From the sequence record NC_048047.1: 64,000 nucleotides of DNA, one strand, 5' to 3'. The first letter of the stretch is position 1; each line of letters starts with the position of its first letter. Below the pieces are notes generated by a model, which was not told the origin of the DNA, searched no databases, and saw only the letters and a list, made by a program, of their open reading frames with translations. A program made the position numbers and the translations under genes. Positions 3,483 through 8,799 of this stretch are shown piece after piece.

Positions 3483-5375
3483 ATGGGCTGGCTTTACCCC
3501 CAATACGACCAAGAACCGGCGCCTGAGCCGCGTGAGTACACCGAAGCCGAGGCGCTCGCCGCGCGGACCCGCATGGAGGAAGCCCGTGTGGAACGCGCCG
3601 AGGAAATCCTGGACTGGCTGACGAACGGCCCCAACCATCATCGCCCTAGCGAAGCTGAAGTCGCCGCTGCTGAGACCCCTTCGGTGGAAGACGCCCCGCG
3701 CAAGGTCAAGCTCGAAGGCCTGACCCTCACCGAACTCGCCTCCCTGGCGCACACCGAAATCCTCGCCCTGGTCAAGAAGGCCGGCGGCCAGCGTGCCTTT
3801 GCACGCAAGACCGGTATCCCGCGCACCACACTGCAAGGCTACCTCAACAAGTCCCGCGAGGACCCGTTCGGCCACCGCCCCGCCCCCGAGCCGGTCGAGA
3901 TGATCACCGACTTTGGTCCGGCGATGCGTCGTGTGGTGCGTCGGTTCATCCTGACCTCGGCCCAGGACGGCACCAAGGTCCACGAGCCGTTCCTACGCAA
4001 CCTGGAGGCCTATGTCTCCTACCTCAACACGGACGAGGGCGACACCTGCGAACTCTTCGTCGCCGGCTTCACCTACAACAAGTCGCTGTTCGAAGATCAC
4101 TCCAAGCAGAAGGTCTTCTGGCCTGAGTCGATCAAGAAGTACATGCGCGACGAGCGCCTGCGCTTCAACGATCGCGTCGACTTCTGCGCCGAGATGAACA
4201 CCCTGCCGACCGCCGTCTCGCCGCTCTCGGGCTTCGATGGCTACACCCATGACAAGTGGGGCATCTTCCCCCATCCCAAGGTGCAGTTGGTCTCGGTGCC
4301 GACCATGGCCCACAAGCCGGCCAAGATGAACATGACCACCGGCGCGGTGACCATGCCCAACTATGTGCCCAAGAAGGCCGGGCTCAAGGCGGCGTTCCAC
4401 CACATCATCGGCGCGGTGATCCTGGAGATGGACGTGCGTGGCCGGTTCTTCTGCCGCCACCTGATCGCCGACGAGGCCGATGGCAGCTTCTACGATCTGG
4501 ACCGCTTCGTCTTCGACGGCGAGGTCACCACGGGCCATCGCGCCCGCGCCCTGACCCCCGGCGACGTCCACGTCTTCCAGATCGATCCGATGGTCTCGGC
4601 CGTCACCTTCGGCATGTCGCCGACGACGATCGAGCATGAGGAACACGGCCGCGTCTGGGAAGCGACCGATCAGGTCTCGATCGTCGATCGCCTGCGCCCC
4701 GAGTATCTCTTCATCCACGACGTGTGTGACTTCAGGGTTCGCAACCACCACTCGATCGCCGACCCGCTCGATCGCTTCCGCCTGTTCGTCGACGGCACCG
4801 AGTCGGTCGAGGACGAGTTGAAGGAGGTGGCGTTCTTCCTGTCGACCGTGGGCCGCGAGGACATGCAGACCGTGGTGGTCGAGAGCAACCACGATCTGGC
4901 GCTCAAGAAGTGGCTCAACACCGCCGACTACCGCCATGACCCGGTCAACGCCCTTTTCTTCCTGCGCTGCCAGACGGCCTCCTACGAGGCTGTGGCCAAC
5001 CGCGTCGATCACTTCTCGATCTTCGAGCACGTGATGAAGACGTCGTTCGCCGAGTACGACTGCCAGGACGTCGTCTTTCTGCGTGAGGACGACACCTTCG
5101 TGGTCGACGGCGTCGAGATGGCCAACCACGGCCACAACGGAGCCAACGGCTCTCGCGGCAACATCAAGCAGTTCTCCAAGGTCGCCTCCAAGGTGACGAT
5201 CGGGCACTCGCACTCGGCCGGCATCAACGACGGCGCGGTCCAGACCGGGACCTCGACCAAGATGAAGCTCGGCTACAACAAGGGGCCGGGCTCCTGGTCC
5301 TGGTCGCATGCGCTCCAATACCAGAACGGCAAGCGCACCTTGCTGACCATCCAAGACGGCCTCGCCTATCTGTGA
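3483..5375 (+). CDS. HTH plus calcineurin-like metallophosphoesterase phage protein
   Basis: 'GDVH', 'HDVCD', 'ESNHD', 'NHGH', 'GHSH' motifs in order; N-terminal HTH-like 'GGQRAFARKTGIPRTTLQGYL'. Confidence 0.65.
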   Translation: MGWLYPQYDQEPAPEPREYTEAEALAARTRMEEARVERAEEILDWLTNGPNHHRPSEAEVAAAETPSVEDAPRKVKLEGLTLTELASLAHTEILALVKKAGGQRAFARKTGIPRTTLQGYLNKSREDPFGHRPAPEPVEMITDFGPAMRRVVRRFILTSAQDGTKVHEPFLRNLEAYVSYLNTDEGDTCELFVAGFTYNKSLFEDHSKQKVFWPESIKKYMRDERLRFNDRVDFCAEMNTLPTAVSPLSGFDGYTHDKWGIFPHPKVQLVSVPTMAHKPAKMNMTTGAVTMPNYVPKKAGLKAAFHHIIGAVILEMDVRGRFFCRHLIADEADGSFYDLDRFVFDGEVTTGHRARALTPGDVHVFQIDPMVSAVTFGMSPTTIEHEEHGRVWEATDQVSIVDRLRPEYLFIHDVCDFRVRNHHSIADPLDRFRLFVDGTESVEDELKEVAFFLSTVGREDMQTVVVESNHDLALKKWLNTADYRHDPVNALFFLRCQTASYEAVANRVDHFSIFEHVMKTSFAEYDCQDVVFLREDDTFVVDGVEMANHGHNGANGSRGNIKQFSKVASKVTIGHSHSAGINDGAVQTGTSTKMKLGYNKGPGSWSWSHALQYQNGKRTLLTIQDGLAYL

Positions 5376-5395
5376 CGTTATTCTTGACATGGACG

Positions 5396-5403
5396 TTAAC
5401 CAT
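5396..5403 (+). promoter_or_regulatory. CtrA-type TTAACCAT box (representative copy)
   Basis: Exact TTAACCAT at 5396, 8862, 16397, 19025 and 30746, all intergenic near TTGAC -35 boxes. Confidence 0.6.
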
Positions 5404-5438
5404 GTCATGAATGGCGTCACCAAAGCCCCCGGACATCC

Positions 5439-6425
5439 ATGACCTTTCGCTACCTGACGACCTGCTCGGGCGTCGAGGCGGTGACGCTCGGCTGGGCGCC
5501 GCTCGGCGCCCGCGCCGTCGCCTATTCCGACTACGATCCCGACAACGACTTCCCCTCGCGCTTCCTCAAGGAGCGCTTCCCAGAAACCCCCAACCTCGGC
5601 GACATGCTGAAGATCGACGGCCGGCTCTGGCGCGGCCGGGTCGATGTGCTCTGGGGCTCCACGCCTTGCCAGAGCTTCAGCCTCGGCGGTCTGCGTAAGG
5701 GCATCAAGGACCCTCGCGGCGCCCTGACCCCCGCCCTGGTTGGCCTCGCCAACGAAATCGCCCCCAAGGTTCTCTGCTGGGAGAACGTCGATGGGGTCCT
5801 CACCGACGGAGACAACGCTTTTGGATGCTTTCTCGCAGCGCTGGCCGGAAGCGATACTGTCCTCGTCGCTCCAGGGAACAAATGGCCAAGTGCAGGTTAC
5901 GTTGTTGGACCCGAACGCCGTGTTGCGTGGCGACTCCTCGATGCCAAACACTTCTTCCTCCCCCAGCAGCGCCGGCGAGTGTTCCTTGTCGCGTGCCCTG
6001 TTGACGGACCCGATCCCCGAGAAGTTCTATTTGAAGGCTTCGCGCCTTTCGACACTCTTGGCGAACGCCGAGAAAGCTGGGCGCCAGTTGTCGAGCGCCG
6101 CGATGTCAGCGCTGACGCTTACGCCTGCGCGATCCGAGGCCGCAAGCACGGGCAGCAGTTCGAGCAAGGCGGCCTGATCGCCAACTGCCTGCGCGCCAGC
6201 CAGGGCGGCTCCGACAAGCCTCAGGTGCTTGCCAAGGAGGCCGGCGAGCAGTGGCGGGTGCGCAACATGACCCCGGTCGAGGCCGAGCGGTGCATGGGCA
6301 TGCCCGATGACTGGACCCTGATTACGGGCGCCTCCGACAGTGATCGCTACCACGCGATCGGCAACAGCCTCGCCGTCCCCTGCGTCCGCTACATCGGCGA
6401 ACGCCTCCTCAAAGTGCTCGGGTAA
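5439..6425 (+). CDS. DNA cytosine-5 methyltransferase
   Basis: Motif I 'CSGVEA', IV 'STPCQSFS', VI 'WENV', VIII 'QQRRRV', IX 'TPVEAERCMG', X 'IGNS'. Confidence 0.92.
   Translation: MTFRYLTTCSGVEAVTLGWAPLGARAVAYSDYDPDNDFPSRFLKERFPETPNLGDMLKIDGRLWRGRVDVLWGSTPCQSFSLGGLRKGIKDPRGALTPALVGLANEIAPKVLCWENVDGVLTDGDNAFGCFLAALAGSDTVLVAPGNKWPSAGYVVGPERRVAWRLLDAKHFFLPQQRRRVFLVACPVDGPDPREVLFEGFAPFDTLGERRESWAPVVERRDVSADAYACAIRGRKHGQQFEQGGLIANCLRASQGGSDKPQVLAKEAGEQWRVRNMTPVEAERCMGMPDDWTLITGASDSDRYHAIGNSLAVPCVRYIGERLLKVLG
5791..6177 (+). CDS. Putative +1-frame polypeptide nested in the C5-MTase gene (M.EcoHK31I beta-like)
   Basis: Open +1 frame with GGGAG RBS 7 nt before ATG 5791; contains 'CSLSRALLTDPIPEKFYL...AEKAGRQL'; main-frame codons lose GC3 bias over much of the overlap. 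Confidence 0.6.
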   Translation: MGSSPTETTLLDAFSQRWPEAILSSSLQGTNGQVQVTLLDPNAVLRGDSSMPNTSSSPSSAGECSLSRALLTDPIPEKFYLKASRLSTLLANAEKAGRQLSSAAMSALTLTPARSEAASTGSSSSKAA

Positions 6426-6522
6426 GACGCACCCCGTCAACCCGGCCTCCTGGTGCTGCTGAAGCGCCGACACCTGCCTATCCGCGATGGAAATGCGCGG
6501 CCCTGGGCCTGGAGCCAAGACC

Positions 6523-8799
6523 ATGAAACTGCGCCGCCGCCGGCTCATCTGGGACATCGAAACCGATGGCCTGCTTCACGAACTGACTCGCGTTCACGTC
6601 CTGACGATCCGCGACATCGACACCCGGCAGACCTACATCTTCCGCCGCAACGACGTGATGGACAACATCCGCGACGGCCTGAAGATGCTCAACGAGGCTG
6701 ACCTGATCGTTGGCCACAACATCATCGGGTTCGACAACTACGCGCTGTGGAAGGTCTACGGCGACGAGTACAATCCCCAAGGCACCATGCGCGACACGCT
6801 GATCATGTCGCGCATGCTCTACTCGCAGATCAAGGACGACGACTTCCGCCTGTGGAAGCGCGGTACCCTGCCCGGCGAGTATATCGGCAGCCACACCCTG
6901 GGCGCCTGGGGCGCCCGTCTGGGCTTTCCCAAGGACGATTACGCCGCCCGTCGCAAGGCCGAGGCGACCGAGAACTGGCAGACGGTCTGGGGTCTGCCCG
7001 ACCAGTTCGACAACAACCTGAAGTCCTACATCCACTGGTACACCTGGGCCAACTGGAACCAGGACATGGAAGACTACGGCGCCCAGGACCTGGACCCGAC
7101 TGAGGCCTTGTGGCTGAAGATGGAAAAGGTCGAGTGGTCCGAGGACGCCACGATCCTGGAGCACATGATCTGCGACCTGATGGCGCGGGTCGAGCAGAAC
7201 GGCATCAATTTCGACCGTACCCTGGCCCTCCAGATGGAGGCCGAACTTCGCGCCGAGTATGACGCCAAGACCAAGGAAGCTATCGAGCACTTCGGCAAGT
7301 GGTTCACCGCCACCAAGTGGCGCAAGGGCGAGCCGCCGCGTCACGAGTACGGCGAGGACGACAGTCGTTTGAACTGGGGCGAGGTCACCGTCCCCAAGCG
7401 GTCGATCAAGTTCAAGGACCCCATGTCCAAGGGCGGCGACAAGACCGAAGGCTGCGCCTACTGCCCGATCGTTCTGAAGGAGTTCAACCCCAACTCGCGT
7501 CCCATGATCGTCAACCGGTTGGAGACGATCTACGAGTGGGTGCCGGAGCGCTTCACCGAGAAGAACACGCCCATCGTCGACGACGAGGTGCTGCGTAACC
7601 TTGGCCTGACGATCCCGATTTGCGTCGAACTGGCCGAAATCTTCTACTACAAGAAGCGCCTGGGCCAGCTAGCCGATGGCGCGGAGTCCTGGCTGCACAA
7701 CTGCGATGACGAAGGTCGCATCCACGCCCGGATCAATCCGGGCGGCACGGTGACAAACCGGGCCAGCCACTCCAAGCCCAACATCGCCCAGGTCCCCCGC
7801 GTCGTCTACAAGAAGCTCCTGCAATGGCAGGAGGAAAACGTCACGATCCGCTGGATCGGTGGCAAGATCGCCTACGGCGTCGAGAAGATCGACAAGCGCT
7901 CCGGCGAGAAGTTCTACGACCAGAACCTCACGCCGCTGCTCGATCCCGATGGTCAGCAGTTCGTCGGCGTGCCCGTACGCGACAAGGAGACCGGCGAGTA
8001 CGTCCTGGACCGCGACGGCACGATCAAGACCAAGCCGACCCTGCTGAAGGGCCGCGCCGGCGATCACGGCTGGGACAGCCGCAATCTCTTCATGGTGCCC
8101 GAAGGATGGGTGCTGATGGGCGCCGACCAGAAGGGGATCGAGCTTCGCGCCCTGGCCCACTTCATGTGGGAGTTCGATGACGGCGAATATGCCCAAATCC
8201 TGCTCGAAGCCGACATCCACGACGCCCACACCGCCGCCATGGGCCTGGACTCGCGGGACAAGGCCAAGACGTTCATTTACGCGATGATCTACGGGGCGCA
8301 GGACTTCAAGCTCGGGGTCACCATCGACCCGACGCTCGAAAACTACCCCACCAAGGCCAAGGCCCTGGGCGCCCAGATGCGCGAGCGTCTGATGTCCAGA
8401 TATCCCGCCTTGCGTAAGCTGATCAAGTCGGTGCAGCGCACGGCCAAGAAGGGCTATGTCGACGCCCTGGATGGACGTCAACTGTTCGTCCGGGCCAAGC
8501 ACAGCGCGCTCAACACCCTGCTGCAAGGCGCGGGCGCGACCCTGGCCAAAATCTGGTGCGTCTCGTTCGAGTCGTTCATGGAAGAGGCCGGCTTCAAGCA
8601 TGGTTGGGATGGCGATTTCGTCATCCTGGCGTGGATTCACGACGAACTCCAGGTCGCCGTGCGTGACGATCCGGCCGTCAAGATCGCCGCAGAGCGCTAC
8701 ATCACCGAGGCCGCCACCTACTCCGGCGAGCGCGTCAATTTCCGCCTGCCGGTCGAGATCGACGTCAAGTGGGGCACGCGCTGGAGCCATACCCACTAA
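6523..8799 (+). CDS. DNA polymerase family A, T7-like, with 3'-5' exonuclease
   Basis: ExoI 'WDIETDG', ExoII 'GHNIIGFD', motif A 'DQKGIELR', B 'KTFIYAMIYG', C 'IHDELQ'. Confidence 0.97.
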   Translation: MKLRRRRLIWDIETDGLLHELTRVHVLTIRDIDTRQTYIFRRNDVMDNIRDGLKMLNEADLIVGHNIIGFDNYALWKVYGDEYNPQGTMRDTLIMSRMLYSQIKDDDFRLWKRGTLPGEYIGSHTLGAWGARLGFPKDDYAARRKAEATENWQTVWGLPDQFDNNLKSYIHWYTWANWNQDMEDYGAQDLDPTEALWLKMEKVEWSEDATILEHMICDLMARVEQNGINFDRTLALQMEAELRAEYDAKTKEAIEHFGKWFTATKWRKGEPPRHEYGEDDSRLNWGEVTVPKRSIKFKDPMSKGGDKTEGCAYCPIVLKEFNPNSRPMIVNRLETIYEWVPERFTEKNTPIVDDEVLRNLGLTIPICVELAEIFYYKKRLGQLADGAESWLHNCDDEGRIHARINPGGTVTNRASHSKPNIAQVPRVVYKKLLQWQEENVTIRWIGGKIAYGVEKIDKRSGEKFYDQNLTPLLDPDGQQFVGVPVRDKETGEYVLDRDGTIKTKPTLLKGRAGDHGWDSRNLFMVPEGWVLMGADQKGIELRALAHFMWEFDDGEYAQILLEADIHDAHTAAMGLDSRDKAKTFIYAMIYGAQDFKLGVTIDPTLENYPTKAKALGAQMRERLMSRYPALRKLIKSVQRTAKKGYVDALDGRQLFVRAKHSALNTLLQGAGATLAKIWCVSFESFMEEAGFKHGWDGDFVILAWIHDELQVAVRDDPAVKIAAERYITEAATYSGERVNFRLPVEIDVKWGTRWSHTH

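Follow-up and report, generated by a model that had tools for sequence, protein, structure and literature searches.

Can a gene for a cytosine-5 (C5) DNA methyltransferase (MTase) contain a second gene in another reading frame? The question is raised by a stretch of 64,000 nucleotides (nt) from record NC_048047.1, here called the window. It is part of a 322,272-bp phage genome (IMG/VR contig UViG_2974566622_000001) and has a G+C content of 63%. A first-pass annotation, made from the letters alone, had proposed that the MTase gene of this phage harbors a nested open reading frame (ORF) in its +1 frame and that the enzyme is a heterodimer made from one dual-coded locus. That the +1 ORF is a genuine second coding sequence is strongly supported by comparison with its relatives. 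We further consider it likely, with a probability of roughly 0.7, that the gene is dual-coding and that the internally started +1 ORF specifies an overprinted accessory polypeptide that acts together with the MTase. A heterodimeric MTase is plausible; this view is based on related enzymes in which the same peptide is fused to the enzyme. The elements in question are the following.

5439..6425, + strand: coding sequence (CDS) of the C5 DNA cytosine MTase, 328 amino acids, defining frame 0 (ORF list, PF00145, TIGR00675).
5728..6177, + strand: nested ORF at its maximal extent, 149 open +1 codons plus the stop codon TGA 6175-6177; the only six-frame profile match.
5791..6177, + strand: nested ORF from ATG to TGA, 128 codons, as read from the sequence; the ATG is private to this phage.
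5779..5783, + strand: GGGAG, a Shine-Dalgarno (SD)-like site formed by the codons of W114 and E115 in motif VI, 7 nt before ATG 5791.

Much of what had been described at first pass can simply be read from the sequence. No stop interrupts the +1 frame between 5728 and 6174. It is open for the 128 codons from ATG 5791, and a start at TTG 5740 would yield 145 codons. Counted from either 5728 or 5791, the ORF lies wholly within the MTase ORF, which is the layout known from M.EcoHK31I, with translation being predicted here. The GGGAG is indeed made by the codons of motif VI, and the peptide string with LL..AEKAGRQL is present in the +1 product. The G+C content at third codon positions (GC3) of the main frame, which had been reported to drop, is 0.43-0.70 between ~5754 and 6158 versus 0.80-0.90 elsewhere in the gene (90-nt windows).

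The length of the ORF is less telling. Among the 47 long ORFs of the window, six have an open +1 stretch of at least 145 codons. Synonymous codon shuffles of the MTase gene produce at least 149 open +1 codons in 69% of the trials and an ATG-started ORF of at least 128 codons in 45%. The minus strand even offers an antisense ORF of 652 codons (3993-5951), which covers the neighbouring gene upstream and the MTase gene over its first half. Shadow ORFs of this kind are typical of coding DNA rich in G+C, and the example shows that length alone is no evidence here. Sequence searches with the +1 peptide of the window retrieved no match in Pfam, PHROGs, NCBIfam or PDB, nor did any of the 120 closest homologues of the enzyme match it in frame. 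A signal beyond chance is obtained only by comparison with relatives.

Genomes, viral contigs and metagenomes supplied the 128 homologous CDS of the comparison. No two of these are identical, and they cover 24-100% amino-acid identity and G+C contents from.32 to.71. A non-redundant subset contains 46 relatives that are less than 65% identical to each other. At codons 118-199 of the query, the +1 frame is stop-free in 117 of the 128 sequences, as compared to 36 expected from codon shuffles. In the non-redundant relatives, not a single +1 stop is found at codons 122-199, where 47.6 are expected (0 versus 20.8 at 122-160, 0 versus 9.7 at 161-181 and 0 versus 17.1 at 182-199). The gene flanks and the +2 frame, which served as controls in these relatives, yield ratios of observed to expected stops of 0.7-1.5. 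Codon choice fits this picture. For Leu and Val before a codon starting with A, a stop-forming codon is used in 8 of 104 cases inside codons 118-199 and in 647 of 1127 cases outside. The alternative frame is evidently kept open beyond the expectation of the shuffles.

The pattern of substitutions points in the same direction. Codon position 3 is the most variable one throughout the gene, except for codons 182-223 (nt 5982-6108). There, position 1 of the main frame, which is the third position of the +1 frame, varies most, and position 3 of the main frame varies least.

5982..6108, + strand: segment under purifying selection in the +1 phase (codons 182-223 family-wide; 6018-6108 within the window clade).

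At codons 200-223 the mean pairwise peptide identity amounts to 0.46 in the +1 frame, 0.22 in frame 0 and 0.24 in the +2 frame. The G+C contents of the three codon positions at codons 182-223 are.77/.57/.51, those elsewhere.67/.52/.74. In this segment the main-frame GC3 is reduced in all of the 24 high-GC relatives, so that the drop seen in the window is also a family trait. A check of synonymous sites across homologues, as suggested by the first-pass annotation, thus revealed fewer synonymous changes in the main frame together with a substitution periodicity in the alternative phase. With the frame kept open and a family profile that matches (see below), the proposal of a dual-coding MTase locus is strongly supported.

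Synonymous constraint could, of course, also reflect an RNA structure or a DNA site, without any second protein. The stretch is of very low divergence when compared to a sister phage (see below), as would suit such an element. The constraint, however, recurs every three bases in the +1 phase, and it is the peptide, not the nucleotides, that is kept across G+C contents of.39-.71. The RNA fold of 5960-6130 is unremarkable (z score -0.68), a match in Rfam is missing, and the same peptide is found in frame elsewhere. We consider this possibility close to negligible.

What selection appears to maintain is a small module in the C-terminal part of the +1 product.

5977..6120, + strand: conserved +1 module, in the window of the form CSLSR.LL...IPEKFYLK...L..LL.NAEKAGRQL......SAL (alignment; profile match with an E value of 5.5e-13).
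6037..6117, + strand: two predicted helices, model residues 33-46 and 52-59 (AlphaFold2, within the confident part 6001-6120).

In the relatives the consensus of ~50 residues reads SLSDILE.G.VPQRYYLS.KAC.GILRRAEKRGK.LP..L..AL. The module of the window is colinear with 99 others, and its hydrophobic core positions are invariant or nearly so. A profile built from the +1 peptides of distant relatives matches the +1 peptide of the window with an E value of 5.5e-13 (Z=1e6), part of the score stemming from shared frame-0 homology; it also matches 125 of the 128 +1 peptides, while the +2 controls give no hit. When all six frames of the 64 kb are searched with a profile of the relatives' +1 peptides, 5728..6177 is the sole match (E 4.7e-16). 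Like the other members of the family, the ORF of the window overlies motifs VI-VIII, complies with the module profile (SLS..L...P..Y.LS...C.GIL.RA..RG..LP..L..AL) and ends 5-45 codons past the module. It extends over main codons 97-246, those of the relatives from ~57, 97 or 122 to ~223-247.

AlphaFold2, applied to 100 aligned modules, gave a predicted local distance difference test (pLDDT) score of 79-91 for model residues 21-60 (6001-6120); the mean of the model is 70.6. The corresponding helix is also confident in the model of a beta chain (see below), which is otherwise poor (predicted template modelling score 0.30). Upstream of the module, the apparent conservation of the +1 peptide is largely a shadow of the enzyme motifs: when read off-frame, GGxPCQxFSxAG gives strings such as EEPPANHSALP, and WENVPG gives GKTSP. 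Given that LS.KAC.GIL looks like LT.REC.RLQ, the module might be taken for a copy of motif IX that has diverged; an hhalign probability of 0.06% led to the rejection of this idea. As a side observation, the window clade has an insert of its own in frame 0 (5850-5927, residues ~137-156), GED..LVPPG..W..AGYV. Over 20 columns, hhalign pairs it with the +1 string DG.L.PSS..W.NSGMG of distant relatives devoid of the insert, with a probability of 2.6%. This weak match could be due to chance or be a trace of a segment that changed its frame.

Does the family trait persist in the phage under consideration? Its clade has 18 members, CcrColossus-like phages included, and shows the phase switch at codons 194-223, where the identity is 0.43 in the +1 frame and 0.22 in frame 0. 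The sister phage L084 is 99% identical and differs at 468 positions over 7 kb, on average at 14 per 210 nt. These differences are almost absent from one tract.

5802..6220, + strand: tract with 2 differences from L084 in 419 nt, ~28 being expected from the 7-kb mean.

The two bins of this comparison that cover 5799-6218 have no more than 2 differences and 1 difference; the two longest stretches of the 7 kb free of any difference fall within them. In the comparison with L001 (87% amino-acid identity), position 3 changes 0.12-0.13 times per codon at codons 182-246 versus 0.26-0.32 times elsewhere; positions 1 and 2 show no such drop. Substitutions that separate the window from L001 are for the most part conservative in the +1 frame but radical in frame 0.

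One might still suspect that the ORF of this particular phage is a decaying relic or just a chance open frame of a G+C-rich gene. Its length is not significant, its ATG is private, its module is divergent, and long off-frame ORFs are common in the window. This suspicion is met by the phase switch of the window's own clade with its doubled +1 identity, by the conservative nature of the +1 changes, by the slow evolution of all three codon positions in this region, and by the retention of the hydrophobic core positions. We regard a relic or chance frame as very improbable.

The start of the nested product is a more delicate issue. The first-pass annotation had placed it at ATG 5791. The ATG and its SD site are there, as claimed; the use of this codon is doubtful, since it is absent from the 99%-identical L084, which also lacks TTG 5740. 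Stops in close homologues, which had been named as a possible objection to the +1 frame, do occur within the first ~10 codons: at codon 121, just past the position of ATG 5791, 8 of 18 clade relatives have one. From codon 122 onward, the frame is open in all 46 non-redundant relatives. Just there, the clade offers an alternative.

5802..5823, + strand: clade-conserved start zone, main codons 122-128, with ATG, GTG or TTG in 19 of 19 clade members.

In most of these 19 members, an SD-like motif precedes the start by 6-12 nt. The start zone of the window provides TTG 5821-5823 and, nine nt upstream of it, GGAG 5808-5811. With ATG 5791 lacking conservation and the +1 frame showing no enrichment of ATG codons, the case for a start has to be built on this TTG/GTG/ATG zone and on the depletion of stops; the 5' boundary of the nested ORF is uncertain. 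A 'conserved ATG' with the N-terminus MQLTLF was rejected as evidence for a start, the N-terminal likeness being an off-frame shadow of motifs IV, VI and VII-VIII. An internal sigma-70 promoter, too, was considered and is not supported.

An internal start would be dispensable if the frame were changed near motif VIII, be it by programmed +1 frameshifting or by transcriptional slippage. The product would then be a truncated enzyme with motifs I-VIII and the module, made next to the full-length one, and a free small protein would not be made. The module does follow directly upon motif VIII, the lack of ATG enrichment upstream would be understandable, and in relatives with a split gene (see below) a shift would restore a single chain with all motifs. 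However, codons 122-181, upstream of the module, contain 0 stops in 46 of 46 relatives, with 30.5 expected. At least 60 stop-free codons are maintained there, which a shift at motif VIII would not need, and this argues for independent initiation. The codons of motif VIII (CAR CGN CGN ...) are devoid of a slippery run, a conserved nucleotide site does not seem to exist at G+C contents ranging from.39 to.71, and gene callers find starts and call the ORF alone thousands of times. A change of frame is, in our opinion, improbable.

What, then, could be the function of an internally started small protein? Here the architecture of related genes is instructive. The window and most of the relatives are of the nested type: frame 0 comprises motifs I-X, and the +1 ORF ends soon past the module. 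Other relatives are split or fused.

L200:2287-3409, L201:2323-3529 and L199:2838-4113: split MTases, each with an alpha chain and an overlapping +1 beta chain.
L007:3001-4368: fused MTase of Flavobacterium sp. DG1-102-2, with the module in frame after motif X.

In the three split genes, alpha is encoded in frame 0 and ends after motif VIII. Beta is encoded in the +1 frame, begins with the module and continues with the recognition region and motifs IX-X; the overlap with alpha is ~470 nt. An error of sequencing or assembly as the cause of the split is ruled out by recurrence, the identical beta protein being present on 33 contigs in the case of L200, a ~45-kb phage, and on 19 contigs in that of L201; L199 alone breaks in a G run. 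The fused type is represented by L004, L007 and L010 from low-GC Bacteroidota, where the module is found in a C-terminal extension after motif X. When frame-0 proteins are searched with the profile of the +1 peptide, these three are the only ones retrieved (E 8e-14 to 1e-11, residues ~367-444), and they are also the only relatives with a closed +1 frame (4-5 stops). The DNA of their module has the other two frames full of stops and no trace of motifs VII-VIII. A protein search with the module of L007 retrieved nothing apart from the query. No gene among the 128 relatives thus combines the nested ORF with an in-frame module. Two of the architectures link the module covalently to the enzyme, and by the common argument from gene fusion this, together with the exclusivity, suggests that it works with the enzyme. 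One detail of the first-pass annotation has to be reversed in this context. The element SLS.IL....P.KY.LS had been taken as one that usually stands in frame in C5 MTases; in this family it is normally in the +1 frame and stands in frame only in the split beta chains and the C-terminal fusions.

The fusions also bear on a further reading, namely that the nested product is translated without being an enzyme subunit. It could regulate the expression or timing of the MTase or serve a separate, overprinted phage function. Selection in the +1 phase and conservation of the ORF demonstrate a function, not which one. The frame-0 enzyme retains all its motifs, and in most relatives the module is a short, basic pair of helices that would suit nucleic-acid binding. 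Against this reading stand the covalent linkage to the enzyme in two independent architectures, as beta chain and as C-terminal fusion, and the exclusivity of nested and in-frame modules, a pattern typical of cooperating parts. A role other than that of a subunit is unlikely, though it deserves to be kept in mind.

The enzyme itself is canonical. The frame-0 protein is recognised by PF00145 (E 2e-36) and TIGR00675 (E 1.5e-31), and an alignment with 15 relatives locates the motifs, in order and in one frame.

~5463-5480, + strand: motif I.
5664-5672, + strand: motif IV (PCQ).
5781-5789, + strand: motif VI (ENV).
5964-5990, + strand: motif VIII (QxRxR).
6261-6317, + strand: motif IX.
6360-6380, + strand: motif X.

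Invariant residues in the alignment that are present in the enzyme of the window are C9 S10 G11, P76 C77 Q78, E115 N116 V117, Q176 R178 R180, R275..G287 and G308 N309. A frameshift artefact or a pseudogene can be ruled out, as frame 0 is conserved in the relatives across the whole region. The gene lies within a replication module. Its downstream neighbour (6487-8799) encodes a family A DNA polymerase, its upstream neighbour (3483-5375) a protein of 630 amino acids that has no confident Pfam match. The MTase gene of L001, a relative, has a PNKP-like gene and an RNase T-like exonuclease in its vicinity.

The closest precedent is M.EcoHK31I, an isoschizomer of M.EaeI. Its alpha chain comprises motifs I-VIII as well as X, plus the target-recognition domain, and its beta chain supplies motif IX (PMC2836561, PMC3404938). 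There as here, the second polypeptide is encoded wholly inside the MTase gene in another frame. The N-terminal ~42 residues of the EcoHK31I beta chain are dispensable (PMC2836561), which resembles what is to be expected for the weakly constrained N-terminal part of the window's product. In contrast to M.EcoHK31I, frame 0 of the window has motif IX (residues 275-293) as well as motif X, as had already been suggested at first pass. The large chain thus does not lack motif IX, and the nested chain does not supply it: the nested product has no match to PF00145 and no similarity by hhalign to the region of motifs IX-X. Since the main frame retains motifs IX and X, the system of the window is analogous to M.EcoHK31I and not the same. 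A language-model search returned as the nearest named neighbour a cluster called 'EaeI methyltransferase beta subunit family' (0.71-0.73), which may be taken as a lead only.

M.AquI, the other precedent, is split into alpha with motifs I-VIII and beta with the recognition region and motifs IX-X (PMC3404938). The split relatives L199, L200 and L201 correspond to this description, their break being in the variable region and their beta overlapping alpha in the +1 frame. The enzyme of the window, unlike AquI, is unsplit, with all motifs in one continuous frame-0 ORF.

A parallel outside the MTases is found in the Rz/Rz1 spanins of phage lambda and its relatives. One of the spanin genes is embedded in the other in the +1 frame, and the products form one complex. 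Across phages, the two genes are seen embedded, overlapped, separated or fused. The proteins and their function, lysis, are unrelated to the present case, and the complex has been shown for the spanins, while for the MTase module we can only infer it.

How widespread is the nested ORF? A search of 1.84 billion proteins with the profile yielded 6,210 representative clusters at E<=1e-3, none of them named, of which 1,046 were at E<=1e-30. Nearly all of them are 'hypothetical proteins' of 150-220 amino acids without Pfam domains. Database proteins of 147-220 amino acids match the whole nested protein and are gene-caller predictions of the nested ORF. The thousands of such entries are explained by gene callers that sometimes choose the nested ORF at the cost of a truncated enzyme. 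An example is L198:2817-4193, where the nested ORF (166 amino acids) and a C-terminal piece of 231 amino acids were called and the intact MTase of 458 amino acids was not. PHROG 16143 ('DNA methyltransferase', a profile of 139 positions) matches the relatives' +1 peptides with E values of 1e-7 to 8e-11; the divergent peptide of the window remains below its threshold. This PHROG and the 'hypothetical protein' entries represent the same nested ORF, but describe neither the overlap nor a function.

By tblastn with one nested protein (P0128), 142 phage records in GenBank were found, with the match under genes annotated as methyltransferases. The +1 position within the annotated MTase CDS was confirmed for Omega gp127, P1, a P1-like phage, Vibrio phage K453 and Enterobacter phage CobraSix; none of these five records, that of P1 dmt included, has the nested ORF annotated separately. 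In P1 (NC_005856), dmt extends over 66412..68676 and the nested +1 ORF over 66713-67201 (L208:1801-2289), ~163 codons that are missing from the annotation with its 535 features. In the dmt genes of P7, SJ46 and JK004, which are longer and were taken whole, the longest open +1 stretch is the nested ORF. Of 5,426 complete E. coli genomes, 493 have the nested ORF on P1-like plasmids, and the features under the match are methyltransferases only. In the literature that was searched, no paper contained the motif strings or a description of such an ORF.

Two phage genes of this group are peculiar in other respects. The MTase of Mycobacterium phage Omega (gp127/gp128, L204:1194-2498) is annotated as two CDS in the same frame parted by a stop (1937 and 1944). 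With the nested +1 ORF inside gp127 (1369..1842 of L204, 157 amino acids), one enzyme there has three ORFs. The dmt gene of Escherichia phage vB_EcoM-Ro157c2YLVW (L205:6-3221) has an insert of ~330 residues between the C and the Q of motif IV (...GGTPC / ... VVHN / CQAFS). The insert looks like an intein, and the nested ORF starts downstream of it.

From these data the following picture may be drawn. The same mRNA would carry the full-length enzyme and the nested ORF from 5791 or 5821 to 6177. Ribosomes would start internally in a zone around codons 118-128 and make a protein of ~12-13 kDa. Its N-terminal 60-70 residues would be little more than a weakly constrained off-frame reading of motifs VI-VIII, and its C-terminal 45-50 residues (nt ~5977-6120) would form the conserved small helical module. 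The latter is placed where the enzyme frame encodes no more than a hypervariable linker, which joins motif VIII to the target-recognition region. The small protein would bind to the MTase as an accessory subunit, a proposal based on the relatives that build the same module into the enzyme itself. It may contact the catalytic and the recognition domain, or the DNA, which is a guess.

The ORF conservation, the selection in the +1 phase, the membership of the window in the family and the existence of fusions are documented by sequence comparison. The start site, the physical association with the MTase and the role of the module are deduced from these findings. Several observations have to be set against our proposal. 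Translation of the nested ORF is predicted from sequence, and the public sequencing data containing DNA of the window are metagenome DNA or RNA contigs only; four of the metagenome runs yielded no more than short fragments of an L084-like strain. Taken alone, the length of the ORF in the window has no significance (P 0.45-0.69 by codon shuffles). Conservation is lacking for ATG 5791, L084 having ACG (5792 T>C), and over the relatives +1 ATG codons are not enriched when compared to shuffles (99 versus 89.9). The module of the window is divergent, showing NAEKAGRQ in place of the basic RRAEKRGK of most relatives, and the module has no sequence match in Pfam, NCBIfam or PDB. The frame-0 enzyme has all canonical motifs and may be active alone. 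The tract of low divergence from L084 exceeds the ORF on both sides of the module and may in part be due to recombination, and a comparison with L002 shows little reduction of position-3 changes.

It seems that the nested gene is old and widely distributed and has so far escaped description. One may go further and assume that an ancient overprinted +1 gene of phage-type C5 MTases encodes an undescribed and required accessory subunit in phages and mobile elements of Proteobacteria, Actinobacteria, Firmicutes and Cyanobacteria, with P1 and P7 dmt/dam, Omega gp127 and the 322-kb phage of the window among them. On this wider assumption we would take an even bet.

Overlapping genes that are long, lie on the same strand and can be shown to be under purifying selection are seldom met outside small viruses, and pipelines for annotation drop them. 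The present candidate is backed by thousands of independent sequences and belongs to a much-studied enzyme family that includes a gene of a model phage, P1 dmt. If the nested product is a subunit, recoded, i.e. codon-optimised, expression of the annotated ORF silently deletes the partner, and this loss might account for phage methyltransferases that turn out inactive or altered. Where gene callers choose the nested ORF, they would truncate a real enzyme, as in L198. In the series of nested, split and fused genes, nature would have run an experiment on the way in which an overprinted peptide turns into a domain. On the wider assumption, the module would have moved during evolution among the nested position, the N-terminus of beta and the C-terminal fusion, and many of the 'single-chain' MTases would really be two-chain enzymes. 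EcoHK31I would look like one case of a wider principle instead of a one-off.

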